Sequence record: NC_019521.1 | Direction: 5' to 3' (one strand) | DNA length: 64,000 nt | The notes under the pieces: generated by a model | Seen by the model: only the letters and a program-made list of their open reading frames with translations | Told to the model about the DNA's origin: nothing | The model's database searches: none | Position numbers and translations under genes: made by a program | Part shown: positions 18,376-52,759 of the stretch, piece after piece | Position numbering within the stretch: position 1 is the stretch's first letter | Layout: each line of letters begins with the position of its first letter

Positions 18376-18417
18376 AAACCCATGTAACTGAAACTTACAT
18401 GGGTTTCGTAGTATAAT
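18376..18417 (+). repeat. Hairpin-promoter cassette 1 (stem-CTGAAAC loop-stem + TAGTATAAT)
   Basis: aaacccatgtaa-ctgaaac-ttacatgggttt; TGAAAC-N17-TATAAT. Confidence 0.85.
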
Positions 18418-18480
18418 ACATTTAATTAATTAAATGCATTTCGTTACTTTGTAACATATATACAAAAAATACTTTCAATT

Positions 18481-18684
18481 ATGGCTAAAACTACATTAAC
18501 TCCACAAGAAATCGAAAAGGCTAAGGAATATTTCGGAAGAGGTGAATATCTTCATTTGGAAATCGTTTCGTGGAAAGACGAACCGTCATCATTCCCTTTC
18601 GTGACTTCATTGGAAGAGCTTATTAATGCTTTCAAACTTTGGGGTGACGCTAAAGATGTAAGACGTCTTTCGATCGAATGGTAA
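18481..18684 (+). CDS. Hypothetical early protein
   Basis: TTCAATT-ATG start after cassette. Confidence 0.7.
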   Translation: MAKTTLTPQEIEKAKEYFGRGEYLHLEIVSWKDEPSSFPFVTSLEELINAFKLWGDAKDVRRLSIEW

Positions 18685-18713
18685 TCTATTTCTAACTTTT
18701 ATTTTTTTCAATT

Positions 18714-19241
18714 ATGTACTTATCAAACATATACGAATCTTTCGTAGATTCTCAGATTTCTAATCCGTTTATCAATAACATGATTAAGAATCTTCCTTTC
18801 GAACAAATCACAGAAGGTAAATTTCCTGAACTGTTAAATACGTACCCCGAAGGTGTACGTAAAACTATCGAAGTTCTTCCAAATATTCTACACAAGCTAC
18901 ATACTTATTACAATGTTCCTGTAAAATGTGTTAAAGTAAATCACGAGTTGGAATTCGAACATGTTTCAAGTGAATGTACAACTGTTCAAGCCTTTCAATC
19001 TATTGTAAAGGCTGATCTTTGTACTAACTTTTCATTTACTGTCGATTTCGATAAGTTTACTGGTAGATTACCAATTAACAAATATCATCAAAAACGTACA
19101 CAGGACGATATTTTCATCATTGTAAGAAAACATTCAGGATTCATAAGTGTCGAAATCAGTGTATTCGATTACAAATCGTTTATCAGTAATGTAGAAATCG
19201 ATGAAATATTCGATCTTATCGTAGGTACTCCAAATTTCTAA
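18714..19241 (+). CDS. Hypothetical protein, paralog of 22858-23391
   Basis: Shared NLPFxxITxxxFP..YNVxV block. Confidence 0.7.
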   Translation: MYLSNIYESFVDSQISNPFINNMIKNLPFEQITEGKFPELLNTYPEGVRKTIEVLPNILHKLHTYYNVPVKCVKVNHELEFEHVSSECTTVQAFQSIVKADLCTNFSFTVDFDKFTGRLPINKYHQKRTQDDIFIIVRKHSGFISVEISVFDYKSFISNVEIDEIFDLIVGTPNF

Positions 19242-19244
19242 ATC

Positions 19245-19805
19245 ATGAACATATTCTTCCTAGATAACGATGAAACTATTTCAGCTTCATTATATACTGA
19301 TAAGCATATTATCAAAATGATTACAGAAACTTGTCAGATGCTTTCAACTTACGCTCATGAGAAATTCGAAAATCATCCTGTAGAGCTTTACAAACCTACA
19401 CATCGTAATCATCCATGTACTAAATGGTTATTCGAATCAACTAATAACGTTATACGTTTATGTAATATCGGTATTGCATTAGTTTCTGAATATCATTACA
19501 GATTCGGTAAACTTAACAATTTCTATAAAGCTAAACAAATACTTCATTATGTTTCGTTTAGAATTCTAGATTGCAGTTTCGAACTAGGTACCGAATTACC
19601 CTGTGTTGTAGCTGAATATGATGAGAATCTTTCAGTTTTCGAAAATTACGAAAAGTATTACATTACTCACAAGTTACAAAATGCTAAGTTTACTAACAGA
19701 CGTGAGTCAGAATTACATTGGACTAATAAAGCTGTAACATATTACGGGCAACAAAAGATTAAGGAAATTCAACAGATACTTCAAATACCAATAGAAAGAT
19801 TTTAA
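19245..19805 (+). CDS. Pyrimidine-dimer DNA glycosylase (DenV/Pyr_excise)-like protein
   Basis: MNIFFLD..DKHIIKMITETCQMLST and YKPTHRNHPCTKW. Confidence 0.7.
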   Translation: MNIFFLDNDETISASLYTDKHIIKMITETCQMLSTYAHEKFENHPVELYKPTHRNHPCTKWLFESTNNVIRLCNIGIALVSEYHYRFGKLNNFYKAKQILHYVSFRILDCSFELGTELPCVVAEYDENLSVFENYEKYYITHKLQNAKFTNRRESELHWTNKAVTYYGQQKIKEIQQILQIPIERF

Positions 19806-19806
19806 C

Positions 19807-20238
19807 ATGGCTAACGAAACAAAAACATTACCAGTTCCAAGTTTAATACCTGACTGTATAATATACGACTATGATGGTAGAAATCCAGAATTAGCTTGGA
19901 CTAGAGATTTAAACCGATCTGCACAATTTGCAACAATTACTACAGTAATGGGTGATACATCAGTACCATGGGATAGAATCGTATTAGTACATAGATTACA
20001 GGATCAATTACTTAATCTATTGAAATACAAATTAAGCCTAATGACTACTTGGAGTAGAGGAATTTCACATTCTGATATCATTGATGCTATTAACACCAAG
20101 AAAGCTTTGATACGTGACATTGGTTGGAAACTTAGATGGGATGTATTTAATCAAACGAAATCAGAAATTATTGAAATAATCGAATCGTTAGGTTCTATGA
20201 ACCTTGAACAAGCAATAGAATTTAGAAAGGACAAATAA
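19807..20238 (+). CDS. Hypothetical protein
   Basis: ORF track. Confidence 0.65.
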   Translation: MANETKTLPVPSLIPDCIIYDYDGRNPELAWTRDLNRSAQFATITTVMGDTSVPWDRIVLVHRLQDQLLNLLKYKLSLMTTWSRGISHSDIIDAINTKKALIRDIGWKLRWDVFNQTKSEIIEIIESLGSMNLEQAIEFRKDK

Positions 20239-20239
20239 C

Positions 20240-20596
20240 ATGAAAAACTTACATTGGTTACTCGCATACAAACTCGATCTTAGATGTGCTGAATCTATTC
20301 AGGAACTTGAAGATAACGTAAAGGATATTCTATCTATTCTTGATAAAGTTAAGAACGATATTAAACCTCTTGAGGATAAACTATCTGAAGACGTTTTCTG
20401 GGATTTACAAGAACAATTAGAATCTTGTATAGAATCGTTCGAAATTATTAAAGTAATGAGAGACATGGAATTCGAAGATGCTGCTGGAAATTACAATGAA
20501 GCTTTAGCTTGTTTGTATGATTTCTGTGATGAAAAACTATTTATAGACGATCAGGTTAGAAGATTCATTTGGTTAGAACTTTCACATACTATTTAA
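20240..20596 (+). CDS. Hypothetical acidic protein
   Basis: ORF track. Confidence 0.65.
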   Translation: MKNLHWLLAYKLDLRCAESIQELEDNVKDILSILDKVKNDIKPLEDKLSEDVFWDLQEQLESCIESFEIIKVMRDMEFEDAAGNYNEALACLYDFCDEKLFIDDQVRRFIWLELSHTI

Positions 20597-20597
20597 C

Positions 20598-21824
20598 ATG
20601 AATAAATTTAATCAAGTTTTCAAATCTTCGTTAATCAATACTATCGGATACGATCCTATCGAAGTCGAAAGATTACCACTATTACAGAAATACTATATTC
20701 GGTTATATTATAAGTTATTCAATTCAAGTCCTTCTGAAAGAATAAGAACTTTCGTAGAATTCGAATGTAGTGACGCTTATAAAGCACAATTACTAACCTT
20801 AGAATCTATAAACTTACCTGAAGAATATAGTTGTTCGTATTACAAGATATCGTTATATGATTTGTTCTTTTCTGATACACAAACGTCATATTTACTGTTT
20901 CTCGAATTAGCTACAACTGATGTAATATTCGACAAAGTATTTCAGGAAAGATTCCATTGGATTTTTGATAAAGCTTACATAAAGTTTCTAGTTGAAAGTA
21001 ATCAAACTATCGTAATACTTAATGATAAGATATTTGACGAACAGATTCTTACGAATTTCGAGCTTTCTAAATTGTACGTTAATCATATCAAATTCGAAGA
21101 TCATACATCAGAATTCTTACATGAAAGACTTACGAAATTATTTGATCCTGTTAAAAACTTAGCATTCATTAAATATTACCTTCTAACTGAATGTGAAGAA
21201 TGCATAAACGATTTAACAGAATGGATCATAAAATCTATAGAATACGATTACGAGGATAAATCAAAGTATAAATATCGTAAAGATTTCTTTAACGATCTTT
21301 TCAAAGTCATATGTATAGACGCTTTCTCAGGTAAGTTTATTCATAAGATTTACAAGATTCAGAATTTAATAAGTCTAGAAAACAGGGAAGCTTATGTTAG
21401 ATTAGTTGAAGAACATGTAAAGACTTTCGGTTCTTCAAGATATTCCATACTTCTACTTTTTCCAAGTTCTTTAACTTCTACTGAAATCGTTCAGAAAGCT
21501 TTGAACGATTTGTCAAATCGTTTAACAGACAATACTAGTAAATCTGAAAACGTTTATAACTGTATCGATTCAGTTTATAGGATTTTTACTAGTTACGACT
21601 TCAACAATACAAGGATTCGTGACGAAATAAAAAGTTCACCATATTTCGATTCATTAAAGCTATATACGATATTTGCTATATACGTTAAACATCATAATTT
21701 CAATTTTCTTATGCATATTCCTAGAAATTGTATGACTCACAATATTCTTATGAGATTTGCTAAAGATTATCCGTTTTACCTTGGACAATATATGAAAGAC
21801 TGTCCAGATTTATTTGAAGACTAA
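20598..21824 (+). CDS. Hypothetical protein
   Basis: 408-aa ORF. Confidence 0.7.
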   Translation: MNKFNQVFKSSLINTIGYDPIEVERLPLLQKYYIRLYYKLFNSSPSERIRTFVEFECSDAYKAQLLTLESINLPEEYSCSYYKISLYDLFFSDTQTSYLLFLELATTDVIFDKVFQERFHWIFDKAYIKFLVESNQTIVILNDKIFDEQILTNFELSKLYVNHIKFEDHTSEFLHERLTKLFDPVKNLAFIKYYLLTECEECINDLTEWIIKSIEYDYEDKSKYKYRKDFFNDLFKVICIDAFSGKFIHKIYKIQNLISLENREAYVRLVEEHVKTFGSSRYSILLLFPSSLTSTEIVQKALNDLSNRLTDNTSKSENVYNCIDSVYRIFTSYDFNNTRIRDEIKSSPYFDSLKLYTIFAIYVKHHNFNFLMHIPRNCMTHNILMRFAKDYPFYLGQYMKDCPDLFED

Positions 21825-22147
21825 TGGAAAATACAGACTTACAATACAGAGATAATTCTTATTTTAACGAAAAAGATTATTACATATTCGAATCACATGG
21901 TCAGTTAATGCTCAGACAAGTTGAGTTTTCTGGAACTAACTGGTTTGTAAAAGATGGTGTACCTTACAAAGCTACAACTGTTAGATGTGTAGTTTCCAAC
22001 GTTGGTAACTTTATCAAATCTATAGAAACTTTACTTGAAAGTATTAACAAGAAACGTAAATATGGTGAACGTACTGGATTCTTTTATGCTGACTTGGGTA
22101 CTGGTTTAACATTAAATTATGATATGAGTTTCATGAAATATACATAA
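21824..22147 (+). CDS. Hypothetical protein
   Basis: TAATG coupling. Confidence 0.65.
   Translation: MENTDLQYRDNSYFNEKDYYIFESHGQLMLRQVEFSGTNWFVKDGVPYKATTVRCVVSNVGNFIKSIETLLESINKKRKYGERTGFFYADLGTGLTLNYDMSFMKYT
22139..22146 (+). promoter_or_regulatory. TATACATA late-type promoter motif
   Basis: Exact octamer upstream of 22167. Confidence 0.5.
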
Positions 22148-22166
22148 TACATAAATCAAATAAGAC

Positions 22167-22715
22167 ATGAAATCAATATCAGAACTATACGAAGCTTTCG
22201 TAGAATTAAAACATATTAACAAAGACAAAGAATTTATAGCAGGTAAGGATGTAAAAATCGATTACAAATCTTTACCTAAGCATGCTCAAAAATTCTTTGA
22301 TGCTTTGTATTCGGGATTCGAACAATTAGGTAACAAGATAACATTCGAAGCTAATGAATCTAAATTAAACTTGAATAATGCTAGTTATAATCTTGTAAGA
22401 GTTTCAAAACCTGGATCAGACTATGGAACTATTCTTACTAGAGAAGAAGTTCTAGAACATAACGCTAAAAAGGTTGTACATTTGACTTCAGGATTTTACA
22501 TTCATTCAGCCTCAAATGATAAACCTATTTATATTACGTTATTCCTTAACATGGGTCCTAAAGGTGACGCTTCATTCAAGCTTAGCTTTAACATGGATTC
22601 AACTAAAGATTTGAAATATGCTCCAGGAATGGATGGCTTAAAATTAGCGACATCTGTAGTTAAGGCTATGATATCAAAGAACAAAGCTTATCAGAATAGT
22701 TTCTTCAATATGTAA
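22167..22715 (+). CDS. Putative internal head protein (capsid-targeting-like N-terminus)
   Basis: MKSISELYEAF N-terminus and late-type motif upstream. Confidence 0.45.
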   Translation: MKSISELYEAFVELKHINKDKEFIAGKDVKIDYKSLPKHAQKFFDALYSGFEQLGNKITFEANESKLNLNNASYNLVRVSKPGSDYGTILTREEVLEHNAKKVVHLTSGFYIHSASNDKPIYITLFLNMGPKGDASFKLSFNMDSTKDLKYAPGMDGLKLATSVVKAMISKNKAYQNSFFNM

Positions 22716-22739
22716 GAAAAATTAAGAAAAAATGTAAAA

Positions 22740-22783
22740 GAAACCCTCGGAAACTGAAACTTTCGAGGGTTTCGTAGTACTAT
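22740..22783 (+). repeat. Hairpin-promoter cassette 2
   Basis: gaaaccctcggaaactgaaactttcgagggtttcgtagtactat. Confidence 0.85.
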
Positions 22784-22857
22784 ACATTTATAAATAAATG
22801 GATTCCGTTACTTTGTAACGTATATACTAAATTAATAAATAAATATATCTTTCAATT

Positions 22858-23391
22858 ATGACAACTATCAAATCAAAACTTTGGCAAGAACATGTAACTT
22901 CAGTAACAGAAAACTTTCATGTTGTAGAATATCTTTGGAATCTTCCATTTTCAGAAATTACAAACGCTAACTTCCCAGATTTCTTCAATTATGGTTCTAT
23001 TGACAGAACTAACGAAATCGTTAAACAAATAATCTGTCACTTTCTGAAATACAATGTTGATGTTATTTTGACATACGATAACATGATTACTCAACGTATT
23101 TCAAATGTATTCGAATTAAAAGATTTAAGTAAGTTCGTAAACCTTAAACAAGTTTGTATCGTAGATTTACAGGGTCAATTCAGAAACGAGAAAGAAGAAT
23201 CTAAACGATATGGTGACGCTTTTACTATCGCTTTCGATACTCTTACCGATTTGGAGAAATCTAAACAAGATTACCGTCCTAACTTAGATGTAAGATGTTT
23301 CCGAATTATGGATATTGAAATGGAATCGTTCATCAAAGCTTCGGAAGTTGAAGAAATATCTGACCTAATTATTGACAGTCTTCAAAAATAA
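22858..23391 (+). CDS. Hypothetical protein, paralog of 18714-19241
   Basis: WNLPFSEITNANFPDFFN..KYNVDV. Confidence 0.7.
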   Translation: MTTIKSKLWQEHVTSVTENFHVVEYLWNLPFSEITNANFPDFFNYGSIDRTNEIVKQIICHFLKYNVDVILTYDNMITQRISNVFELKDLSKFVNLKQVCIVDLQGQFRNEKEESKRYGDAFTIAFDTLTDLEKSKQDYRPNLDVRCFRIMDIEMESFIKASEVEEISDLIIDSLQK

Positions 23392-23408
23392 AAAGTAAAA
23401 AATAATTA

Positions 23409-23452
23409 AAAACCTACGGAAACTGAAACTTTCGTAGGTTTTGTAGTATAAT
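23409..23452 (+). repeat. Hairpin-promoter cassette 3
   Basis: aaaacctacg-gaaactgaaacttt-cgtaggtttt then gtagtataat; compensatory stem changes. Confidence 0.85.
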
Positions 23453-23488
23453 ATACTCAAATAACAAATTTATAAATATATTTCAATT

Positions 23489-23803
23489 ATGGCTTTATTA
23501 TCAATGTCTAACGGACCAAAACAAACATTAAACGTTAACTACGCGTTAGAAACTCTTCGAAATTCTGGAATCGATGCAATGAAACATTGCTTCAAACTTA
23601 CTGTTATGACTGATAACGGTTACGAGGAAGTTAAAACCTTCACTCATAAATCCATTCAAAAATGTTATGTTGTAACTTTAGCTGGTGGAAAATCTTTCAC
23701 ATTGTCTGAATTACTTCACTTACAAAAGGAATTAAAACAAGCTCGTATTAAAAATAACGAATCTTTAAACTGCAAAAAAGTTTACAGATATGAAGCAAAA
23801 TAA
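23489..23803 (+). CDS. Hypothetical early protein
   Basis: TTCAATT-ATG start. Confidence 0.7.
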   Translation: MALLSMSNGPKQTLNVNYALETLRNSGIDAMKHCFKLTVMTDNGYEEVKTFTHKSIQKCYVVTLAGGKSFTLSELLHLQKELKQARIKNNESLNCKKVYRYEAK

Positions 23804-24113
23804 TTTCGAGATTTTGGAGATTAACGGAAGACAATTAGTCTTCTGTTCTCCATCTTATGCTGAAACTTTATATGATTCTAAGATATTAGACATATCACCA
23901 GTAGGTCAAGCTACTACTCTTTCAAAAGAAGTTTATGAAGCATTAACACCTGTTCGTCTAAATACAGTTTATTACGATTACCTTAATAGTGGTAAATATT
24001 TCTTAGACCCTCGTGACAGTTTTATGTCATTCATGGAAGCTTCAGGAATGACTAAACGTTTTCCAAAAGAACCACCTTTCATTTTCATCATTCGTCAAGA
24101 CTTTTTAAACTAA
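23790..24113 (+). CDS. Hypothetical protein
   Basis: ORF track. Confidence 0.65.
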   Translation: MKQNNFEILEINGRQLVFCSPSYAETLYDSKILDISPVGQATTLSKEVYEALTPVRLNTVYYDYLNSGKYFLDPRDSFMSFMEASGMTKRFPKEPPFIFIIRQDFLN

Positions 24114-24125
24114 ATACTTTCAATT

Positions 24126-24326
24126 ATGCAAGACCAATCAGTAATAGTCTGGAACTCTGAGACTAATCAAAACGATACTTTAGTAATCGATCAACAAGTA
24201 ATCGATTTCGCAAAGAACTACAAACAAGATCAAAAGAATTTCGACATTCTTTACCTTTCGTCAATTTCCACATTAATCGTTATAGCAATTGTAGTATCGT
24301 TAATCAAAAAATCTAGAAGAAAATAA
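24126..24326 (+). CDS. Small membrane protein
   Basis: One TM helix followed by a basic tail. Confidence 0.65.
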   Translation: MQDQSVIVWNSETNQNDTLVIDQQVIDFAKNYKQDQKNFDILYLSSISTLIVIAIVVSLIKKSRRK

Positions 24327-24328
24327 TC

Positions 24329-24919
24329 ATGAAAATAACTCCGAAAATCCACCTAAGAATCTTCATTTCTATGATTGTAATTGTAGCTCTTTGTGCTGCT
24401 ACAGGTAATCCGTATTTAGCTGTTCTTTCTCTATTTCTAGCTTTATTCGTTTTGAAAGCTTTAGTAAACGAAAGGATTCTTTCCAGAATCGAAAGTTTCA
24501 ATATTGATTTCTTTTCAGAATCTAGAAGTAAACGATTAGAACGTTCGCAACTTAAGAAATACAAAGAACTTCTTAAAGACGGTTTTACTGAAGTTGAGAA
24601 TTCACCAGAATATCTGTTACGTCAAGATAATGGTACGAATACGTACGCATTAAATCCTAAGAATTACAATACGTTATCGAAGCTTATCATAATCAAGAAT
24701 CCTATTACGAAAGGTGGTTATACATCTCGTAAGATTGATAAAGTTTACGTAGAACATAATTTAGCTACTAACGAAATCGATATGTACTGTACAGATTCTA
24801 AAGATCGTTTGTATTTGAAATCTGAGATAAGAATATTCGAAGATTTCGATATTAACGAATTGTATGTCATATTAATGAAACGTCTAACTAAATCTATCGA
24901 ACATGGAAGATATAACTAA
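24329..24919 (+). CDS. Membrane-anchored hypothetical protein
   Basis: Two N-terminal hydrophobic segments. Confidence 0.65.
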   Translation: MKITPKIHLRIFISMIVIVALCAATGNPYLAVLSLFLALFVLKALVNERILSRIESFNIDFFSESRSKRLERSQLKKYKELLKDGFTEVENSPEYLLRQDNGTNTYALNPKNYNTLSKLIIIKNPITKGGYTSRKIDKVYVEHNLATNEIDMYCTDSKDRLYLKSEIRIFEDFDINELYVILMKRLTKSIEHGRYN

Positions 24920-25151
24920 GCATGCTAATTTGATTACAAGTATAACTCTCGTATTAGCTTGGGTTATTTGTATAGTTTCTGTACTTACTATTGGTTTTAT
25001 GAACGACAAGATTTCAGGTAAAAGTCTTATTATCATAATACTAATAGGATTAATGACAGCTTTACTAATGATTGGTATCAAATATGTTTTCAATGAAATG
25101 TCAGCAATCATATTTAAATTGAATCAGGAACTAAAAGAATTTAAACAGTAA
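24903..25151 (+). CDS. Small 2-TM membrane protein
   Basis: Two hydrophobic helices. Confidence 0.65.
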   Translation: MEDITKHANLITSITLVLAWVICIVSVLTIGFMNDKISGKSLIIIILIGLMTALLMIGIKYVFNEMSAIIFKLNQELKEFKQ

Positions 25152-25152
25152 C

Positions 25153-25181
25153 TGAAACTTTTTGACAATCTGTAGTATAAT
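25153..25181 (+). promoter_or_regulatory. Phage promoter TGAAAC-N17-TATAAT
   Basis: Consensus match upstream of the ligase. Confidence 0.75.
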
Positions 25182-25215
25182 ACATCTATATATTTAAACT
25201 ATAATCATTTCAATT

Positions 25216-35938: not shown

Positions 35939-35943
35939 TAAAA

Positions 35944-35988
35944 CGAAACCCTCGGAAACTGAAACTTTCGAGGGTTTCGTAGTAATAT
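35944..35988 (+). repeat. Hairpin-promoter cassette 4
   Basis: 40 bp identical to cassettes 2 and 7; -10 TAATAT. Confidence 0.85.
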
Positions 35989-38756: not shown

Positions 38757-38800
38757 GAAACCCTCAGAAACTGAAACTTCTGAGGGTTTCGTAGTATAAT
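38757..38800 (+). repeat. Hairpin-promoter cassette 5
   Basis: gaaaccctcagaa-actgaaac-ttctgagggtttc then gtagtataat. Confidence 0.85.
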
Positions 38801-42060: not shown

Positions 42061-42109
42061 ACAAAAAGTTTCATCGTAAGTGAAACTTTTTGTCGTTTCG
42101 TAGTATAAT
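42061..42109 (+). promoter_or_regulatory. 13-bp hairpin with TGAAAC in the 3' arm, then N17-TATAAT
   Basis: acaaaaagtttca-tcgtaag-tgaaactttttgt; -35 at 42081, -10 at 42104. Confidence 0.75.
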
Positions 42110-42910: not shown

Positions 42911-42927
42911 CTTTATTTTTCAGCAAC

Positions 42928-42956
42928 TGAAACAATCTAAACTTTCGTAGTATAAT
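42928..42956 (+). promoter_or_regulatory. Phage promoter TGAAAC-N17-TATAAT
   Basis: Consensus match. Confidence 0.75.
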
Positions 42957-43978: not shown

Positions 43979-43999
43979 TAACACACTACTAAATCCTAA

Positions 44000-44027: not shown

Positions 44028-44052
44028 ATTTTTAAAAGCTAAAAACGAAATA

Positions 44053-44676: not shown

Positions 44677-44711
44677 GTTGTAGTTGACCATTTTATATTT
44701 TTGTTATTTTT

Positions 44712-44743
44712 AAAGAACTGGATATTAACGTATCCAGTTCTTT
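44712..44743 (+). terminator. Terminator, 13-bp stem
   Basis: aaagaactggata-ttaacg-tatccagttcttt. Confidence 0.75.
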
Positions 44744-44770
44744 TCGATTAGATCAAATCGTTATTCAGAT

Positions 44771-44799
44771 TGAAACGATTTCATATTTGTTAGTATAAT
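44771..44799 (+). promoter_or_regulatory. Phage promoter TGAAAC-N17-TATAAT
   Basis: Consensus match upstream of the helicase. Confidence 0.75.
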
Positions 44800-44838
44800 A
44801 TATTTCAATACAAATATATTTACACTAATGTCATACAA

Positions 44839-46767
44839 ATGAACGACAAAGATTTTATCGACGACCTAGATGCGTTATTATCCCCAAAACCTGAAAATGT
44901 TTCAACGGAAACTGAAGAAACAAAAGAACTTGTAGAAAAACGTTCAAGGATTCTTGAATGTCTTGATAAAGTAATCGATAAGCTATGCGAGAATCCTGGA
45001 ATCTTACGAGAAAGAATCGAACAAACTCAGAAACCTATTATCGAAAAAGCTCTTAACGCTTATATCAAAGGTGTTAAGAATTACATTGTAGAAGCACCTA
45101 CAGGTGCTGGTAAATCAATCATTGGATTACTTATTAACGAATCAATCTATCTTTACAACAATAAAGATATTGCAGCTTATACGTTAACACCTACAAAGAT
45201 TTTACAGGATCAGTTAGATGAAGACAACAAACGTTTGAATCTTGGATGGGCTTTGTTAAAGGGTCAAGGTAATTACATGTGTCTTGAAAACAATGAAAAC
45301 TTTACGAAAAGAGCTTGCCATAAGTTAGCTATTTCTAAAGCAGCTCAATTACCTTGTGCTGAAACATGTGAATACATTCAAAAACGTAAAGCTGCTATTT
45401 TGTCACATAACGCTGTATTATCTTACGCTTATTGGTTATCTGCTATGAATTACATGTATAACATGCTTGGAGATAATTCACCATTTCAACCGAGAGAAGT
45501 TACAGTATTTGATGAATGTCATATGTTAGCTGATACAGTTCAAAGTATGTTTCAAGTTGAAATATCGAATCAAGTTCAGGATAGAATCGTTAAGCTAATT
45601 TCATTCTATGAATCTGTTGAAAAAGATGTTTACAAGCTTGAAAGAATGTTTGGACTCACTAAAGATTTCAAGAAATGTTTCGATCATCTTTTCAAGATTA
45701 CTAACGAACAATCATTGAAAGATGTTTACGATACTATGCTAATGACTACAGCATATATTCATAGGATTTCGAATATGTTCTTAGACTTCATTCAAGAATA
45801 TTTTCCTAAGAATACTAACCTTTGGTCTGTTGGTCAACAAGAATTCGATAAGAACTTTGAAAGATTCGCATCAGTTTCTTCAAACATGAAATTCTTCTTA
45901 TCAAATAACAAAGATATTGAAAACATTGTTGCAGATAAAACAGTTTTAGATGATGGTACCGTAGTTCTACTATTTAGAACTCTTAACGAATCTAGTTTAA
46001 TGGCTAGACATGTTCATAAGTATACACAATTCGCAGTATGGACTTCAGCTACATTAGGTGGACGTAAAGGTTTAGAATCTTGGGCTGAACAAAATGGTAT
46101 TACGAATTACGAATATACTATCATGGAATCTAATTTCGATTTCGAAAATTGTCCTATCAATATCTGTTCACCTACTATTTCAATGTCATTCAAAGATAAG
46201 GCGAATAACATGAATGCTTTAATGATGCGAATCATGACTTTGATCAATTGTCACGAAGATGAACGTGGTATCATTCATACTGGTAATTTCGAAATAGCTA
46301 GAAATCTTAAGACTCGTACTGAAAAAGGTAATGACAGATTCATTTTCTATAACAATTCATTTGAAAAAGCTCACGCTATCGAAGAACTTAAACGTTCTAA
46401 AAATGGTATTATCGTTGGACCTTCGTTATCAGAAGGATTGGATTTGAAAGATGATTTAGCCAGATTCGCTATTCTCGCTAAAGTACCTTATCCGTCACTA
46501 GCTGATTCATTGAACAAATTAAAACTTGAAAGAATTCCAGGATGGTATGATTGGCAAACAGTTGTAACTGTTCAACAGCAGTTAGGTAGACACGTAAGAC
46601 ATAAAACGGATTGGGGTACAACTTATATGTTAGATTCGGGATTCGAAAGAGTTATAACTAATTCTACATTCCCGAATTACATTGCTAACCGTTTTACAAA
46701 AATCAATGTCAATAAATTAGTAACAGATTTCCAAAATCAAGATTCAGATTTCGATGACTTATACTAA
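44839..46767 (+). CDS. DinG/XPD-family Fe-S DNA helicase
   Basis: EAPTGAGKS, LKGQGNYMC plus three further Cys, DECH, SATL, KVPYP, QQLGR..RH. Confidence 0.85.
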   Translation: MNDKDFIDDLDALLSPKPENVSTETEETKELVEKRSRILECLDKVIDKLCENPGILRERIEQTQKPIIEKALNAYIKGVKNYIVEAPTGAGKSIIGLLINESIYLYNNKDIAAYTLTPTKILQDQLDEDNKRLNLGWALLKGQGNYMCLENNENFTKRACHKLAISKAAQLPCAETCEYIQKRKAAILSHNAVLSYAYWLSAMNYMYNMLGDNSPFQPREVTVFDECHMLADTVQSMFQVEISNQVQDRIVKLISFYESVEKDVYKLERMFGLTKDFKKCFDHLFKITNEQSLKDVYDTMLMTTAYIHRISNMFLDFIQEYFPKNTNLWSVGQQEFDKNFERFASVSSNMKFFLSNNKDIENIVADKTVLDDGTVVLLFRTLNESSLMARHVHKYTQFAVWTSATLGGRKGLESWAEQNGITNYEYTIMESNFDFENCPINICSPTISMSFKDKANNMNALMMRIMTLINCHEDERGIIHTGNFEIARNLKTRTEKGNDRFIFYNNSFEKAHAIEELKRSKNGIIVGPSLSEGLDLKDDLARFAILAKVPYPSLADSLNKLKLERIPGWYDWQTVVTVQQQLGRHVRHKTDWGTTYMLDSGFERVITNSTFPNYIANRFTKINVNKLVTDFQNQDSDFDDLY

Positions 46768-47038
46768 AATCAAAGAACAATTCAAAGATCGATACAATCA
46801 GATTTGTATCGATCTAATGGAAATGATAATCGAGGAAGTTCTATACATAAACGTTTCTATAAACGAATCCGATCAAATGGAAAGCATTTTAGATTCTATG
46901 GAACTATCAGCTTTAAGTTCTGTAATCGATAAATACTATCAAGTTTCGATAAGTAATACTGAAATAAGTTATAAGACTTTCGAAGAGTTAGTATGTCGAA
47001 TCATTTACTTACAAGTAACACCACAGTCAAGGTTATGA
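46754..47038 (+). CDS. Acyl-carrier-protein-like protein (retains DS motif)
   Basis: LDSMELSALSSVIDKYYQVSI..KTFEELV resembles ACP LDSLDLVELIMEIEDEFGIEI..TVGDLV. Confidence 0.45.
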   Translation: MTYTKIKEQFKDRYNQICIDLMEMIIEEVLYINVSINESDQMESILDSMELSALSSVIDKYYQVSISNTEISYKTFEELVCRIIYLQVTPQSRL

Positions 47039-47295
47039 AAAAGACACATAGTGAAATCATCTCTACTATAAATTCAGATTTAGAAGATTTTATGCGATCT
47101 AATAGCATGAATACTAGATTTTCGTATAATGAATATCTTTATAGACTTTGGAGAAGAGAAGATTACGAAGCTTTCTGTGAACATGTAATACATAAGTACG
47201 ATGGATATAACATCAAACGTCAGTTTTTCATGACTATGAACACACTTATAACTAATCTAGCGAACAGGGAAATTATTAAACAACAAAATTCTTAA
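47035..47295 (+). CDS. Hypothetical protein, possibly ACP-like
   Basis: ATGA overlap gives start 47035; EDYEAFCEHVIHKYDGYNI..MTMNTLI pattern. Confidence 0.5.
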   Translation: MKKTHSEIISTINSDLEDFMRSNSMNTRFSYNEYLYRLWRREDYEAFCEHVIHKYDGYNIKRQFFMTMNTLITNLANREIIKQQNS

Positions 47296-47300
47296 AAACT

Positions 47301-47564
47301 ATGATATCAAAGAAACGTTATCAATCAAAATATGACGAAATCAGGTTAGACTTGAATTTCTTCTTAGTAACAGAATTAGATCAGTCTAAAGACTTACAGG
47401 ATTCTGATGTTCTAAACAAAGTATTAGATCATATGGAAATTGCTGATTTGAAAGACTATTTAGAATCAGAATATAACTGTAAAGTTGGAATCGATGCTAT
47501 GACTTATCATGATCTTATCGATCTTCTAACTTTAAGATACTTCGTAAATATAGATTCCGAATAG
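47301..47564 (+). CDS. ACP-like protein (Ser replaced by His)
   Basis: LDHMEIADLKDYLESEYNCKV..MTYHDLIDLL. Confidence 0.4.
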   Translation: MISKKRYQSKYDEIRLDLNFFLVTELDQSKDLQDSDVLNKVLDHMEIADLKDYLESEYNCKVGIDAMTYHDLIDLLTLRYFVNIDSE

Positions 47565-47566
47565 AC

Positions 47567-47878
47567 ATGGAAAATTTCAAAGAAGTTTGCGATTATCTAA
47601 AGTCTGAACTAAAAGAAGTATGTTCTTTAGATTACGAAATATATGCTTACGAAACTCTTTCAGACTTTATCGACGATTATGATATCTTGAATTTCATTTC
47701 AATAATCAAACATAAGAATCGAGGTTTATGTAATATCGAAGTATCGGATTACAGGAAACTGACATTAACTGATATAGCGAACAATATTCTATATAATAAA
47801 AATAGATTGGAACTTTTCGATCTATTTTCTAAAGCTAGTAAAAGAATGAGAGAATCTTGTAAAATCTTGTACACGTAA
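47567..47878 (+). CDS. ACP-like protein (Ser replaced by Asp)
   Basis: IDDYDILNFISII..CNIEVSDYRKLTLTDIANNI. Confidence 0.35.
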   Translation: MENFKEVCDYLKSELKEVCSLDYEIYAYETLSDFIDDYDILNFISIIKHKNRGLCNIEVSDYRKLTLTDIANNILYNKNRLELFDLFSKASKRMRESCKILYT

Positions 47879-47939
47879 ACATAAAATATCAAGTTTAGTA
47901 TAATACATATAATTCAATATATAAATTCAGACAAAGAAC

Positions 47940-48206
47940 ATGACAGAACCTATCATTACAGTGTTGTCTAAAAACGGTTGCGTTCCCTGCGAAACTGTTA
48001 AAGCTACACTTAAATCGAGTAACATAAAGTTTGAAGAAATCAACTTATTCGATAACGCACATATTGCTACCAAATTCAAAATTCGAAACGTACCAACTGT
48101 AATGTTTACTAATAAACCATTAACAGATGATACAGCTATAGAAGTTTCGGAAAAATTCACAGGTCCTGGAACATTGGACAAAATTCAACAATACGTTTCT
48201 AAATAA
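47940..48206 (+). CDS. nrdH: NrdH-like glutaredoxin
   Basis: CVPC, IRNVP; first gene of the nrdHIE block. Confidence 0.8.
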   Translation: MTEPIITVLSKNGCVPCETVKATLKSSNIKFEEINLFDNAHIATKFKIRNVPTVMFTNKPLTDDTAIEVSEKFTGPGTLDKIQQYVSK

Positions 48207-48577
48207 TGACTATCGTTTATGACTCAAGGACTGGGAATATTGAACGATTCATTAACAAAGTAAAAGAACAAACTGGATGGACTTTCGTTAAGATTGATAA
48301 GAATCTTGTCATCGATGAGAAAGTCCATCTTGTTACTTATACTACAGGTTTCGGACACCTCCCAAATCCTACAAAGGCTTTTCTAGCAAATCAATCTAAT
48401 GTAAACAATTTACTTTCTGTATCAGTAAGTGGTAATCGTAACTGGGGACCTAATTTCGGTAAGGCTGGTGATATCATCTCAGATGAATACAACGTTCCGT
48501 TACTATTGAAATTCGAATTATCTGGTAATCCCTCTGAAATAGAAGCATTCATTGAAAACATTCAAAAATTCTCTTAA
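48206..48577 (+). CDS. nrdI: Class Ib RNR flavodoxin NrdI
   Basis: YDSRTGNIERF, TYTTGFG, SGNRNWGPNFGKAG, KFELSG. Confidence 0.92.
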   Translation: MTIVYDSRTGNIERFINKVKEQTGWTFVKIDKNLVIDEKVHLVTYTTGFGHLPNPTKAFLANQSNVNNLLSVSVSGNRNWGPNFGKAGDIISDEYNVPLLLKFELSGNPSEIEAFIENIQKFS

Positions 48578-48583
48578 TACAAT

Positions 48584-51166
48584 ATGAACAATCCTTGGAT
48601 TTTACTTAACAACCAGCTGTTAAATCGAGCTGAAGGAACAATCGATTTAGAAAAAGACAAAGAAGCCGCGAGACAATTCTTCCTAGGATATGTAAACAAG
48701 AATATGGTTTGGTTCCATTCGTTACATGAGAAACTATGTCATTTGGTTAACGAAGGTTACTATTTCGATATGTTTCAGAATTACGAATATGAAGAAATCA
48801 AGGAGGTATTTTCATTCGTATATTCTAAGAAATTTCGTTTCCAATCGTATATGGCTGCATTCTTATTTTACAAGAACTATGCAATGCGTGATGGAGAAAC
48901 AGATCAATTCTTTGAAAGATATGAAGATCGTATAGCTACAGTAGCATTATATACTTCAATTGATCTTAAAACTGGTAAAGGTGATTTACAAAAAGCTTTA
49001 GCACAAGCTGAAATCATGATTAATCAGGAATATCAACCTGCTACCCCGACATTCTCAAACGCTGGAAAACTTAAAGGTGGTGAATTGGTATCATGTTTCT
49101 TAGATGAAATCGGTGATTCTAAAGTTGGAATATCCAAATCTATTCAAGCCGCATTGGATTTATCTTCGATGGGTGGAGGTGTATCGTTTAACGTATCTAA
49201 ATTACGTGCACGTGGTGAAGCTATTAAAGGAATCGACGGAAGAGCTTCAGGTGTTTTACCAGTAATGAAAATCCTTGAAGATGCTTTTTCATATGCTAAT
49301 CAATTAGGACAACGTCCAGGTGCTGGAGCTGCTTATATCAATATCTTCCATTCAGATGTTGAAGAATTTCTAGATTCTAAGAAAATCAACGCTGACGAAA
49401 AATCACGTCTTAAATCGCTTTCGTTAGGTGTTATCGTTCCTGACAAATTCATGGAATTAGCTGAGAAGGATGAACCATTTTATGTTTTCTATCCATATAC
49501 AGTTAAGAAAGAATACGGTAAACATCTAGATGATTTGGATATCGATACAATGTATTCCGAATTAGTTTCTAATCCTAATGTTAAGAAACGTAAGTTAAAT
49601 GCTAGACGTATGTTAACTAAGATTGCACAAGTTCAGAAAGAATCAGGTTATCCATATTTCTTCTTGAAAACTAATGCTAACGAATATCATCCTTTGAAGA
49701 ATTTGGGAGACGTTAAGTTTTCTAATTTATGTTTTACTGGTGATACTTTAGTTAACATAATTACTAGAGATGGTCAATATGTTAAACGTACTATTGAAGA
49801 TTTATCTACAAATTTCGATCATGAAAAAGAAGGATGTATAACAGTACAGGGTGCGTATTGGTCCGATGATAAAGGTCAATGGGACTATGAATGGTTTTAT
49901 GCTACAGCTTTCCAGACAGGTTGGAAAAAAGTAATAAAACTTGAACTATCTAACGGTGGTAATATAAAATGTACACCCAATCATGAAATAGCTACAATTC
50001 ATGGAAAGTATGTCAAGGCTTCAGAATCGATTGGTTCTATTTTAGCTTCAGATTCTAATAATGTATATGTAACTGATATTAAAGAATTAAACGAATGTGT
50101 TCCAGTGTACGATTTGAATGTACAAGGCCCCCATAATTTTACTATTTCTGTAAGTGATAACGAATCGGTTTTAGTTCATAACTGTACCGAAATCATGCAA
50201 TATTCAGAAGTGTCAGAATACAATGATTACGATAAGCAACATAACGATAAAATCAATTACGGTATTTCATGTAACTTAGGTTCTCTAAACATCGCAACTG
50301 TTATGAAGAATTCTAAAGATACTAATCGTTTCGAAAGGATCATAAGTACTGCAATGGATTCTTTAACTCATGTAACTGATCGAACTAACATTGCTGCTGT
50401 TCCTGCTATTGCTAGAGCTAACAAACATTTCAGGTCTGTTGGATTAGGTGCTATGAATTTACATGGTTATCTTGCACAAAATGAAATCATGTTCGAATCT
50501 GATGAAGCTTTAGATTTCGTTAATGTATTCTTCGGAATGGTAAATTACTATTCATTGAAACGTTCCATGGAAATTAGTAGAGAACGTGATTGTGACACTT
50601 TCGAAGGATTTGATGAATCTGAATATGGAAATGGTAAGTACTTTGACAGATACATAGATAACTTCAATCTAGAACCTAAATTCGATAAAACTAGTGAGTT
50701 ATTCGAAGGTATCGAAATTCCAAGTTTACAAGATTGGGTTGACTTAAAGGATGATGTAATGAATTACGGTATCTATCATGCATATCGTTTAGCTATTGCA
50801 CCTAACCAGTCAACAGCTTACATTATGTCAGCCACTCCTTCGATAATGCCAATATCTGATCAAGTTGAAGTACGTGAATATGATCATTCGACAACCTTTT
50901 ATCCTATGCCTGGAATGAACGATGATAACATGTTCTTCTATAAATCAGCATACGATATGGATCAGTTTAAGGTATTACGTTTAGTATCAGTTATTCAACG
51001 TCATATCGATCAAGGAATTTCATGTATTTTACATACAAATTCTGAAGATGATACCGCATTAATGGCAAGATATTACATCTACGCTTGGAAGATGAAACTG
51101 AAATCGTTGTATTATACACGAACTCGTAAATCCTCTATTGACGGATGTATATCCTGTTCAGCTTAA
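48584..51166 (+). CDS. nrdE: Class Ib ribonucleotide reductase alpha subunit, intein-containing
   Basis: YQPATPTF, LVSCF, GGGV, GQRPGAG, SNL-C..TE, LYYTR, C-terminal CISC; no ATP cone. Confidence 0.93.
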   Translation: MNNPWILLNNQLLNRAEGTIDLEKDKEAARQFFLGYVNKNMVWFHSLHEKLCHLVNEGYYFDMFQNYEYEEIKEVFSFVYSKKFRFQSYMAAFLFYKNYAMRDGETDQFFERYEDRIATVALYTSIDLKTGKGDLQKALAQAEIMINQEYQPATPTFSNAGKLKGGELVSCFLDEIGDSKVGISKSIQAALDLSSMGGGVSFNVSKLRARGEAIKGIDGRASGVLPVMKILEDAFSYANQLGQRPGAGAAYINIFHSDVEEFLDSKKINADEKSRLKSLSLGVIVPDKFMELAEKDEPFYVFYPYTVKKEYGKHLDDLDIDTMYSELVSNPNVKKRKLNARRMLTKIAQVQKESGYPYFFLKTNANEYHPLKNLGDVKFSNLCFTGDTLVNIITRDGQYVKRTIEDLSTNFDHEKEGCITVQGAYWSDDKGQWDYEWFYATAFQTGWKKVIKLELSNGGNIKCTPNHEIATIHGKYVKASESIGSILASDSNNVYVTDIKELNECVPVYDLNVQGPHNFTISVSDNESVLVHNCTEIMQYSEVSEYNDYDKQHNDKINYGISCNLGSLNIATVMKNSKDTNRFERIISTAMDSLTHVTDRTNIAAVPAIARANKHFRSVGLGAMNLHGYLAQNEIMFESDEALDFVNVFFGMVNYYSLKRSMEISRERDCDTFEGFDESEYGNGKYFDRYIDNFNLEPKFDKTSELFEGIEIPSLQDWVDLKDDVMNYGIYHAYRLAIAPNQSTAYIMSATPSIMPISDQVEVREYDHSTTFYPMPGMNDDNMFFYKSAYDMDQFKVLRLVSVIQRHIDQGISCILHTNSEDDTALMARYYIYAWKMKLKSLYYTRTRKSSIDGCISCSA
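49730..50182 (+). mobile_element. 151-aa mini-intein in NrdE (no homing endonuclease)
   Basis: SNL|CFTGDTLV (block A), CTPNH (block B), VYDLNVQGPHNF (block F), VLVHN|C (block G); the +1 Cys is the RNR catalytic Cys. Confidence 0.93.
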
Positions 51167-51171
51167 AAACT

Positions 51172-51213
51172 AAACCCATGTAACTGAAACTTACATGGGT
51201 TTCTTAGTAAGAT
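51172..51213 (+). repeat. Hairpin-promoter cassette 6 (TATACATA at 51213)
   Basis: 32 bp identical to cassettes 1 and 8; -10 TAAGAT. Confidence 0.85.
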
Positions 51214-51237
51214 ATACATACTATTAAAAATAACTAA

Positions 51238-51915
51238 ATGAAAACACTTACTAAGATATACGAAAGTCTTTCATAGATTAATGTCGGTGATTATGTAAAA
51301 CTTACAGGATATGATAAAGATTACAGAGAAGCTGTAAGAGATTCTATAACACAAAATTTACTTGGTTTCGAATTCAATGGTGATAGAATTGCATGGGTAG
51401 CTGCTGCTAAATACATAAACGATGCTGTAATGCAAGTTACAGGAATAGAAGATTCTAATTGGGGTGTTCGTGCTAATCTTGAATTGTCGACAGGTGTAAG
51501 TCCTGAGAAACGTAGAATGTCTATCCCTTTAACATTCTTATCACCTGCTTCAAAATCGGAAGTTAAATCATGGTATGACATGAAATTCGATGACTATATC
51601 AAAGAATATGGTACACCTAAAATTCTATCAGAAAAAGAATTTAAAGAAAGACAATCAGTACCAAGTTCTAAAATGTTCCTAGTAACAAAACCATTTACGT
51701 TTAAAGGTAAACATGGTCAACTTAAATTCAGTAAGAATGATATAGCTAAATACTGGAATCAGAGTGGTAGTTTGGGTGACTTATTTACAGTAACTAATGT
51801 TACCACTGATAAATCTGATTCTAAAATGGAAACCGGTTATTCTGATACTCAAAATACTTCTGACAATCTTAAAGAATTGACTTATAAAGATTACGTAAAG
51901 TACATAAATAAATAA
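51238..51915 (+). pseudogene. Internal-head-protein-like gene interrupted by one in-frame TAG (51274-51276)
   Basis: MKTLTKIYESLS*INVGDYVKLTG.. continues in frame into the track ORF 51430-51915. Confidence 0.7.
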
Positions 51916-51935
51916 TTGTTTTAGTATTTTTAAAA

Positions 51936-51979
51936 GAAACCCTCGGAAACTGAAACTTTCGAGGGTTTCGTAGTATAAT
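51936..51979 (+). repeat. Hairpin-promoter cassette 7
   Basis: gaaaccctcggaaactgaaactttcgagggtttcgtagtataat. Confidence 0.85.
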
Positions 51980-52007
51980 ATATACTAATAACAAATATAT
52001 TTCAACT

Positions 52008-52712
52008 ATGAATACTATTTACAATCACCCATGTACTAATGAAGAACTTTTAACTATCGCTCTAGACAGAGTTAACTCTAACATTAAAGGAAAATGGCTT
52101 CATGTTTCAAGTCAATTCAATAACTTTGACAATGATTTTGAATACTATCTAGAAAAACCTATCTATACAGAATTCAAAGACAAATACGGAAACATTAATA
52201 CTGGTTATATTACTGTAATCGAATGTGAGAAATCACTATTCATTAATAAGTGGGAATTCAGTTTATTAGTAATATCTTCAGAAGGTCATGACAAAACTGT
52301 TACAAAAACGAATTCAGGTTTTCATTATACGAAAACTGATAACATAAAAGATCATTATCTTTTCAATTCTAGAAATGCTGTTGTAAGCTGTTCTAAACGT
52401 AACACTTTAAACAAAGCTGATTGGGATTTAATCGTTAGCATAACTAAAACTTTGAAAGTTGACGATTTCTTAAATTCTGGAAATGTATCACCTGAAACTA
52501 AACGTGATATAGTTAATAACAGAATTACATCAGATGGTGGAAATGTTACCTTTCATGATCATGATGATTTGATTCTTTTCACAGAACCGGATAATAGTAA
52601 GGTTTACACTTACTTAGATGTTGAACCTTCTGAAATGTTTCCAGATGGAAAACATAAGTTTCTAGCATCTAACGAACAAATAGATATCGCTTACAATAAA
52701 ATCGTAAAATAA
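52008..52712 (+). CDS. Hypothetical early protein
   Basis: TTCAACT-ATG start; bracketed by two cassettes. Confidence 0.7.
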   Translation: MNTIYNHPCTNEELLTIALDRVNSNIKGKWLHVSSQFNNFDNDFEYYLEKPIYTEFKDKYGNINTGYITVIECEKSLFINKWEFSLLVISSEGHDKTVTKTNSGFHYTKTDNIKDHYLFNSRNAVVSCSKRNTLNKADWDLIVSITKTLKVDDFLNSGNVSPETKRDIVNNRITSDGGNVTFHDHDDLILFTEPDNSKVYTYLDVEPSEMFPDGKHKFLASNEQIDIAYNKIVK

Positions 52713-52715
52713 ATC

Positions 52716-52759
52716 AGAAACCCATGTAACTGAAACTTACATGGGTTTCTTAGTATAAT
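52716..52759 (+). repeat. Hairpin-promoter cassette 8
   Basis: agaaacccatgtaa-ctgaaac-ttacatgggtttct then tagtataat. Confidence 0.85.

Follow-up and report, generated by a model that had tools for sequence, protein, structure and literature searches.

Intergenic hairpin cassettes with promoter-like boxes in the Bacteroidota jumbo phage PAU

The DNA analysed here, referred to as the window, is a stretch of 64,000 nt which corresponds to bases 124001-188000 of Sphingomonas phage PAU (NC_019521 / JQ362498, 219,372 bp; + strand, 100% identity). Its intergenic regions carry eight copies of a 45 bp unit, the cassette, in which the loop of a hairpin contains a -35-like hexamer and a -10-like box follows at a fixed distance. 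The rest of the PAU genome was analysed too, and genome-wide counts cover all 219 kb. Nearly every PAU gene is on the + strand, and the GC content of the window is about 31%.

The host named in the record, Sphingomonas paucimobilis HER1398, is really a Sphingobacterium and belongs to the phylum Bacteroidota (PMC3738902). An earlier note on this DNA had drawn a comparison with RB49-like phages, to which PAU does not belong: it is a jumbo phage of a Bacteroidota host (PMC3738902), remote from T4. The literature places it loosely within the T4 superfamily (PMC4621102). Its nearest phages are pT24, PTm1 and MA9V-1 (PMC10537231), with which it shares about 25-32% protein identity (the ligase ~29-32% with those of pT24, MA9V-1 and MA9V-2).

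Repeated cassettes between PAU genes

Positions refer to the window unless marked as genome positions, and the coordinates of each copy run from hairpin start to -10 end. Folding energies, z-scores against shuffled sequences and covariance model scores are given in brackets; all copies are on the + strand. Cassette 1 (18376-18417; -14.7 kcal/mol, z -4.3; 57.1 bits) is located between gp191 (stop 18371) and gp192 (ATG 18481). Its hairpin (18376-18406) has 12 bp and the loop CTGAAAC, with the -35-like TGAAAC at 18389-18394 and the -10-like TATAAT at 18412-18417. Between gp199 and gp200 lies cassette 2 (22740-22783; -20.0 kcal/mol, z -5.6; 72.5 bits), whose hairpin (22740-22773) has 13 pairs, including one G·U, around the loop ACTGAAAC; the -35-like box is at 22755-22760 and the -10-like TACTAT at 22778-22783. 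Cassette 3 (23409-23452; -15.5 kcal/mol, z -4.7; 69.1 bits), between gp200 and gp201, has a hairpin (23409-23442) with the stem variant CCTACGG/CGTAGG, a -35-like box at 23424-23429 and a -10-like TATAAT at 23447-23452. The longest stem, with 15 pairs (35943-35980), is that of cassette 4 (35943-35988; -23.7 kcal/mol, z -6.1; 72.1 bits) between gp220 and gp221; its boxes are at 35960-35965 (-35-like) and 35983-35988 (-10-like, TAATAT). Cassette 5 (38757-38800; -21.4 kcal/mol, z -6.8; 73.0 bits), between gp226 and gp227, represents the variant CCCTCAG/CTGAGGG, in which all pairs are Watson-Crick (hairpin 38757-38790); the -35-like box is found at 38772-38777 and TATAAT at 38795-38800.

The remaining three copies are close together. 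Cassette 6 (51172-51213; 47.3 bits) is located 3' of nrdE (gp246, stop 51166) and consists of a hairpin (51172-51202), a -35-like box at 51185-51190 and a degenerate -10 box, TAAGAT, at 51208-51213; the late-type box TATACATA described below overlaps it at 51213-51220. Cassette 7 (51936-51979; -20.0 kcal/mol, z -5.6; 74.8 bits), between gp247 and gp248, has its hairpin at 51936-51969, its -35-like box at 51951-51956 and TATAAT at 51974-51979. Cassette 8 (52716-52759; -19.1 kcal/mol, z -6.1; 51.6 bits), between gp248 and gp249, has a hairpin of 14 bp (52716-52750) with the loop CTGAAAC, a -35-like box at 52731-52736 and TATAAT at 52754-52759. All eight copies listed in the earlier note were thus recovered, with cassette 4 starting at 35943. 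Their hairpins comprise 12-15 pairs, with folding energies between -14.7 and -23.7 kcal/mol and z-scores between -4.3 and -6.8.

The family extends beyond the window. With a covariance model based on 12 copies, the number of full cassettes in the genome is exactly 16 and not the eight reported before; they score 47-75 bits (the next match reaches 39 bits). All 16 are intergenic and on the + strand. The stem starts 4-26 nt past the stop codon of the upstream gene, and the conserved A-rich 5' flank often includes a TAA stop. In 15 of the 16 cassettes, the distance from the -10 end to the next ATG is 18-78 nt. The other one is cassette 6 (-10 box at 51208), which has a leader of 216 nt to the annotated ATG of gp247 at 51430. 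This leader is explained by an in-frame ATG at 51238, 24 nt past the -10 box of the cassette. In the gp247 region (51238-51915), this ATG is followed by an in-frame TAG (51274-51276); the 51 codons between the TAG and the annotated ATG are open but include no start codon. TAG is an ordinary stop in 31 other PAU genes. The gene for gp247 is probably longer than annotated, and the TAG is explained by an amber mutation or by an error in the sequence.

All eight window copies contain the block AACTGAAACTT unchanged, in agreement with the invariant CTGAAAC loop noted earlier; under RNA pairing rules, the loop is to be corrected to the 8-nt ACTGAAAC in 12 of the 16 copies. The direct repeats had also been described exactly: 40 identical bp at 22740, 35945 and 51936, and 32 bp at 18376, 51172 and 52718, extending to 38 bp for the pair 51172/52718 (cassettes 6 and 8).

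Pairing in the hairpin

The 8-nt loop ACTGAAAC is closed via a G·U pair. In the four CCCATGTAA/TTACATGGG copies, the loop has 7 nt and the stem 12 perfect pairs; they represent a further, fully compensated version of the stem. Covariation was counted only on the 12 copies with the 8-nt loop, because MAFFT aligned the subfamilies, which differ in length by 1 nt, with the gap at the 5' end and not in the loop; the other four copies were described by inspection. All 108 cells of this alignment pair, and five of the 12 pairs have changed on both sides. This level was reached by none of 500 shuffles and by none of six slid registers. The stems therefore differ and yet stay paired, as had been claimed from the window copies. 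Complete pairing together with compensatory changes means that pairing has been selected: the hairpin is under selection as a structure.

The type of the imperfect pairs indicates the molecule in which the structure forms. The search for wobble pairs was symmetric and allowed both G·T and A·C. In the stems of the family, non-Watson-Crick pairs are exclusively G·T on the + strand (11 G·T versus no A·C); among all intergenic stems, there are 28 G·T and 12 A·C. Every CGG-type copy contains one G·T. The copies at genome positions 90612 and 203431 contain one or two more, and hold their pairing only through G·U. In a DNA cruciform, the opposite arm would carry A·C. The presence of G·T without A·C favours a hairpin formed by + strand RNA over a cruciform. 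The properties of an intrinsic terminator at the level of RNA, a structure on the transcribed strand just past a coding region, are found here in the restriction to G·T, the compensation and the position after the stop codon. No match to Rfam at gathering score was obtained in the whole window.

A role in DNA has to be considered nevertheless. According to this explanation, also raised in the earlier note, the inverted repeat extrudes as a cruciform or folds in single-stranded DNA, so that the -35 hexamer in the loop is either exposed or masked, making early transcription dependent on supercoiling or on single strands. Comparable systems would be the hairpin promoters of phage N4 and, in conjugative plasmids, single-strand promoters. 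Indeed, every one of the 16 copies has the hexamer at the loop, with no variation in loop sequence, and the surrounding DNA is AT-rich (~31% GC). In addition, PAU reportedly has heavily modified DNA (PMC7824862), leaving room for unusual DNA behaviour. However, the invariance of the loop is already accounted for by a -35 function, a central spacer of 7-8 nt disfavours extrusion, and in a cruciform, the + strand G·T of 12 of the 16 copies would have A·C as its counterpart in the opposite arm. Further evidence comes from sites outside the cassette family.

Promoter-like boxes with and without hairpins

The two boxes of the cassette, which we refer to as the early-type motif, are not restricted to it. 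In the window, TGAAAC-N17-TAnnAT occurs 15 times compared with 0.8 expected and a maximum of three in 100 shuffles, so that the earlier statement of a spacing of exactly 17 nt holds. CTGAAAC occurs 29 times (9.6 expected). Genome-wide, AAC is found exactly 17 nt upstream of TAGTAnnAT at 46 of 59 intergenic sites versus one of 30 coding sites, and AAC-N14-TAGTAnnAT is present 47 times on the + strand and three times on the - strand. A generic promoter scan gives CTGAAA-18-TATAAT a score of 10 out of 12. This sigma-70/terminator scan called fewer promoter-like sites than it did in shuffled sequences and is of no use for detection at 31% GC; it was kept only as a criterion for U-tracts (see below).

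PAU has about 50 tGnAAC-N17-TAnnAT sites, 16 of them with the family hairpin. At about eight, the hexamer is located within or at the loop of a strong hairpin of unrelated sequence (genome 15207, 86411, 140348, 209540, 213537 and 218592; window 1540 and 16348). At about five, the hexamer is the 3' arm of a hairpin (e.g. genome 30965, window 42104), and about 20 are without a hairpin (e.g. window 25176, 42951 and 44794). The motif without any hairpin (e.g. at 25153, 42928 and 44771) adds to what had been noted before.

Examples of each arrangement are found on the + strand of the window. A hairpin-less TGAAAC-N17-TATAAT (25153-25181) precedes the DNA ligase gene gp206; other copies, hairpin-less or differently folded, are at 2168-2196, 13772-13800, 42928-42956 and 44771-44799. 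A variant geometry is seen at 42061-42109, where the 3' arm of the hairpin (42061-42093) is a -35-like GTGAAAC paired with an upstream GTTTCAT, and the -10-like TATAAT is at 42104-42109. At 16308-16353, an unrelated hairpin (16308-16344) adjoins TAGTATAAT (-10 at 16348-16353), with TTAAAC in the loop or 3' side 17 nt upstream. This is the layout of the cassette in a different sequence, and a late-type TATACATA is next to it at 16359. Another unrelated hairpin (1510-1539, within 1510-1545) adjoins TACTAT (1540-1545), has TGTAAC inside the hairpin 17 nt upstream, and is located upstream of the thymidylate kinase gene.

Genes behind the early-type motif include those for ligase, helicases, topoisomerase, polymerase and thymidylate kinase, that is functions in replication and nucleotide metabolism, and many ORFans. 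We also noticed a start codon context, TTCAAyT-ATG, with 21 occurrences on the + strand of the genome and one on the - strand (window sites 18474, 18707, 22851, 22984, 23482, 24119, 25209, 30987, 41017, 42165, 42988, 52001 and 62889). Thirteen sites are 29-81 nt past an early-type -10 box and none follows a late-type box. For genes of the early class, TTCAAyT may act as a signal for translation initiation, in a host that does not use Shine-Dalgarno sequences.

A second box emerged from the intergenic regions without the early-type motif. TATACATA is found 50 times on the + strand of the genome, 42 of these within the 7.4% of intergenic DNA, and twice on the - strand. It is located 12-80 nt upstream of structural and lysis genes, such as those for major capsid, portal, protease, sheath and endolysin, often with a terminator hairpin directly before it (window sites 3371, 4934, 16359, 34212, 46842, 51213, 54580, 55683, 59157 and 63362). 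From the genes behind it, TATACATA is probably the late promoter of PAU.

Hairpins and boxes follow a common order. A brute-force search of intergenic hairpins (cut-off -9 kcal/mol or better) yielded 66 strong ones. Twenty-eight of these end 2-13 nt before an early-type -10 box, 16 belonging to the family and 12 having unrelated sequences. At least 12 of the 66 end 3-13 nt before TATACATA, and the remainder stand alone. The distance from loop end to box is 17 nt in the family, 19.4±3.2 nt in the unrelated early-type hairpins and 20.2±2.6 nt in the late-type ones, which have no -35 box. Family loops consist of 7-8 nt, compared with 4-7 nt in the remaining early-type hairpins and 3-6 nt (mean 4.1) before late boxes. 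Overlap occurs to every degree: the hairpin may be upstream of the -35 box, contain it within the loop, or have it as its 3' arm. The rule in PAU is a stop codon followed by a hairpin with T-run and then by the core box of the promoter.

These data bear on the DNA-level explanation. Some 20 intergenic two-box sites are without a hairpin and about five have the hexamer in an arm, so that an obligatory hairpin as in N4 is not found. The promoters of the N4 virion RNA polymerase and the single-strand promoters of plasmids resemble the cassettes in that a promoter element coincides with an inverted repeat. However, they function only when folded, and their loops are small or their boxes within the stem, whereas the PAU motif exists without hairpins and the pairing is RNA-like. 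The fixed spacing of 17 nt to a TATAAT-like box is a signature of duplex recognition by the sigma-70 family, and the hairpins before one-box late-type promoters share the geometry. A loop-centred -35 box as a device for cruciform or single-strand control is thus disfavoured by the hairpin-less copies, by the equal hairpin-box distance in unrelated and late-type hairpins and by G·T without A·C, and we consider such control improbable.

A further possibility is that the inverted repeat serves as operator for a dimeric phage DNA-binding protein which overlaps the -35 box and acts as repressor or activator of the promoter. The outer half-sites, GAAACCC ... GGGTTTC, show hardly any variation and have the -35 box at their centre of symmetry, and gp194, annotated as 'DNA binding protein', is encoded nearby. 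On the other hand, recognition of half-sites does not need the compensatory changes of the inner arms, and half-site spacing differs by 1 nt between the two subfamilies. Moreover, the outline AAACCC ... GGGTTTC is common to many unrelated, terminator-like intergenic hairpins of PAU. An operator function is therefore very unlikely.

The primary sigma factor of Bacteroidota recognizes TAnnTTTG at -7 (PMC9723704). This box is not enriched in the intergenic DNA of PAU, which accounts for eight of 113 + strand sites in the whole genome, and PAU seems to have abandoned the host promoter consensus. A candidate for an alternative reader is gp1, encoded outside the window (94-1182 of L002). It shows regions 2-4 of the sigma-70 family (NCBIfam TIGR02937, 52.8 bits versus a cut-off of 42.9; RpoD matches in PDB at 2e-5). 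The record annotates gp1 as internal capsid (vertex) protein, and weak homologues are found in MA9V and PTm phages. Early-type and late-type boxes precede it at the genome end (219308 and 219331). It may be a sigma factor carried in the virion and is a candidate reader of one of the two promoter classes that are unlike those of the host. One could imagine that gp1, maybe delivered with the DNA, and not the host primary sigma factor, directs the host core polymerase to TGAAAC-N17-TAtAAT by reading the -35 box on an extruded loop of supercoiled, modified DNA. We regard this as a long shot; if true, early transcription would depend on DNA topology, an N4-like principle run by a sigma factor.

Function, relatives and spread of the cassettes

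With a probability of roughly 0.6, we favour the view that the cassette combines an RNA hairpin, which would end, attenuate or stabilize the upstream message, with a two-box promoter in duplex DNA, and has been spread by copying. This reading starts from what is observed directly, namely the motif, its bias in strand and position, the covariation and the shared geometry. In RNA transcribed from the upstream gene, the hairpin of 12-15 bp would form at the 3' end of the message and cause attenuation, termination or 3'-end stabilization. In double-stranded DNA, the same 45 bp would represent a promoter consisting of cTGAAAC at -35, a 17-nt spacer ending in TAG and TAtAAT at -10, restarting transcription for the next gene, usually an ORFan. 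The promoter would not constrain the sequence of the spacer, which could be filled by the 3' arm of the hairpin and a short U-run. The -35 hexamer would then have to be placed in the loop, whose size has increased to 7-8 nt, or in rarer cases form one of the arms. The hexamer is in the loop because a terminator-like hairpin has been pushed against the -10 box, with arm and T-run taking up the spacer. Its position is a consequence of packing and not a device for display. The earlier proposal that one unit acts as terminator and promoter, an idea derived from the promoter/stem-loop elements (PeSLs) of other phages (PMC2839356, PMC4122927), stands in part: the hairpin directly follows the stop codon and the two-box signal is 18-78 nt before the ATG, but the U-tract is weak.

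Several points weigh against the composite reading. The + strand tail after the GC core is UUUCGUAG, with only four U in eight (the cassettes end in TTTCGTAG or TTTCTTAG), and the generic terminator scan, which requires at least five U in eight, calls none of the eight window cassettes on the + strand. The same scan calls three of them terminator-like on the - strand (38757-38790, 51172-51202 and 52716-52750), because the A-rich 5' flank is read as a U-run there. The excess of G·T outside the cassette family is modest (17 versus 12 A·C), and the copies within the family are not independent events. The boxes are unlike the TAnnTTTG read by the primary sigma factor of Bacteroidota (PMC9723704). 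Promoter and terminator activity of the cassettes are deduced from sequence, and the evidence for recombination is circumstantial here.

The cassettes may also stop antisense transcription, and in view of the weak U-tract, the 'terminator' may be an attenuator or a 3'-end stabilizer. The hairpin might not terminate at all. Instead, within long read-through transcripts, it would shield the upstream message against exonucleases acting on the 3' end, or mark a processing site. The weak + strand U-tract, the strand-specific, RNA-type pairing and the location directly past stop codons are in line with such protection, which sequence does not distinguish from attenuation. Canonical U-runs at other PAU hairpins, such as GGGUUUCUUUGUUUU, suggest a terminator ancestry instead, and we consider protection without termination rather unlikely. 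Such runs are found behind other intergenic hairpins especially before late-type boxes (TTTCTTTGTTTT is another example), and this suggests a derivation of the cassettes from a general class of hairpins that are true intrinsic terminators. Like canonical intrinsic terminators, which are often bidirectional, the cassettes have a stem with a GC core, an A-run upstream and a T-run downstream, a position a few nt past the stop codon and RNA-type pairing with G·U. They differ in the broken U-run on the + strand (UUUCGUAG), since the tail must run into an extended -10 box, and in the large loop (7-8 nt), since the -35 hexamer sits there.

The closest known counterparts of the cassettes are the PeSLs of RB49/phi1, T4/PST and KVP40/nt-1. 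In RB49/phi1, their promoter and terminator activity has been tested, and stem-loops are often between the -35 and -10 boxes or overlap the -10 box (PMC2839356); in PST and nt-1, they are just upstream of the promoter (PMC4122927). From such features, Arbiol, Comeau and Krisch proposed PeSL-mediated shuffling (PMC2839356, PMC4122927). PeSLs and cassettes alike are short repeated intergenic units which begin at an upstream stop codon within A-rich sequence and reach as far as the following start codon. In both, 17 nt separate the -35 box from the -10 box, the stem-loop is stable and tolerates G·T, and the dispersed copies precede unrelated small ORFans. The properties by which PeSLs are defined in sequence are thus present in PAU: two boxes 17 nt apart, a stable stem-loop, an intergenic stop-to-start position and many dispersed copies next to small genes without known function. 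Overlap of hairpin and promoter is known from RB49, but the PAU hairpin straddles the -35 box, with the hexamer as loop and the 3' arm in the spacer. The -35 box itself is TGAAAC in PAU and TTGACA, TTTACW or TTGYVH in PeSLs. PAU also differs from the PeSL phages as a 219-kb jumbo phage of a Bacteroidota host with a different sigma consensus, and the layout with an adjoining hairpin serves a second, one-box late-type class as well. Finally, promoter, terminator and mini-circle activities have been shown in RB49 and are putative in PAU. The best reading is that they represent a compact PeSL variant with a new geometry, in a new phage lineage and host phylum, and not a new kind of control.

No such family was found in relatives. 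A megablast search of phage records retrieved only PAU itself, and a degenerate cassette pattern matched only PAU in IMG/VR. Elsewhere, this pattern gave two chance matches without hairpins, one in an unrelated metagenome (L006) and one in a Clostridia genome (L022). In an IMG/VR contig whose NrdE is 55% identical to that of PAU (L009), genes are tightly packed and the cassette is absent, which makes it uninformative here. Tenacibaculum phage pT24 and Chryseobacterium phage MA9V-1 share with PAU short intergenic regions and T-run terminator hairpins directly or closely upstream of promoter boxes; unlike in PAU, the boxes resemble the Bacteroidota TAnnTTTG and there is no repeated cassette family. 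In 50 kb of pT24 that were inspected, TGAAAC-N17-TAnnAT does not occur on the gene strand. The best covariance model match in a stretch of MA9V-1 has an unconvincing 26.7 bits, compared with at least 47 bits for the PAU copies.

How the copies arose can be judged from the part of the stem which is free to vary. Six copies, scattered across 140 kb, have the inner stem CCCTCGG/CGAGGG in common despite the existence of five other versions, and this calls for copying or gene conversion, not convergence. The dispersed near-identical copies would have arisen in this way. Some copies share a leader of 40-60 nt with copies of other stem types. A leader of ~40 nt (88% identical) follows three cassettes with different stems (window 18427-18467 and 22791-22831; L003:40618-40660). 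It contains a small hairpin, CGTTAC-NNN-GTAACG, with the loop TTT in two copies and AAA in the third. The cassettes at genome 26340 and 91514 have a different leader in common, with a GATTC...GAATC hairpin.

Two other origins were rejected. Paralogy of the downstream genes does not explain the likeness of the cassettes: the genome has six paralogue pairs, none of which links two cassette-driven genes. A selfish repeat resembling miniature inverted-repeat transposable elements or repetitive extragenic palindromes lacks support: neither target duplications nor terminal repeats other than the functional hairpin itself are present, and the orientation is strictly that of the genes.

Tandem paralogues do occur elsewhere in the window. 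The glycosyltransferase-like gp169, gp170 and gp171 (1-1500), of which gp170 and gp171 are the closest pair (50% identical), and gp179/gp180 (7657-9992; 34% identical) account for the repeat families D5 and D6. In addition, gp257 contains a 51-nt tandem duplication (57609-57710; 71% identical), a glycine/alanine-rich coding repeat.

Rather than being regulatory units in the first place, the cassettes could be modules for recombination and mobility. The repeats of 38-45 bp would mediate excision and insertion of single flanked genes via homologous recombination and mini-circles, and their regulatory content would merely render an inserted gene self-sufficient. Mini-circles have been demonstrated experimentally for RB49 PeSLs (PMC2839356). 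In the window, gp200, gp247 and gp248 are each bracketed by two cassettes, and a perfect direct repeat of 38 bp is present at 51172 and 52718, 1.5 kb apart. The cassette-flanked genes that were tested are ORFans and not paralogues of each other; for ten flanking proteins of the window, no Pfam match and only one weak PHROG match were found. The inner stem shared by six dispersed copies, as well as the mixed combinations of stem type with -10 and leader type, would fit as well. However, these combinations differ by single transitions, which are able to recur without recombination. Collections of phages, viral contigs, metagenomes and genomes contain no close relative of PAU in which breakpoints could be compared, and the nearest phages, at ~30% protein identity, are without the cassette. 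As substrates for PeSL-like deletion or insertion of flanked genes, the direct repeats of 38-40 bp are plausible. Mobility as the primary role is possible, though we hold it tentatively and at less than even odds; as an added role, it would be compatible with the composite cassette.

Composite promoter/stem-loop cassettes, so far found only in T4-like phages of Proteobacteria and Vibrio, would thereby extend to a jumbo phage of Bacteroidota, and with a clean packing rule: the loop is the -35 box, and 3' arm and U-run are the spacer. The two classes described here, the early-type two-box motif and the late-type TATACATA, provide a first sequence-level map of likely PAU transcription signals, both unlike the host consensus. 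The gp1 candidate makes the question of which sigma factor reads these boxes directly testable. If the recombination role is true, the cassettes would mark points of ORFan gain and loss in a poorly sampled group of phages.

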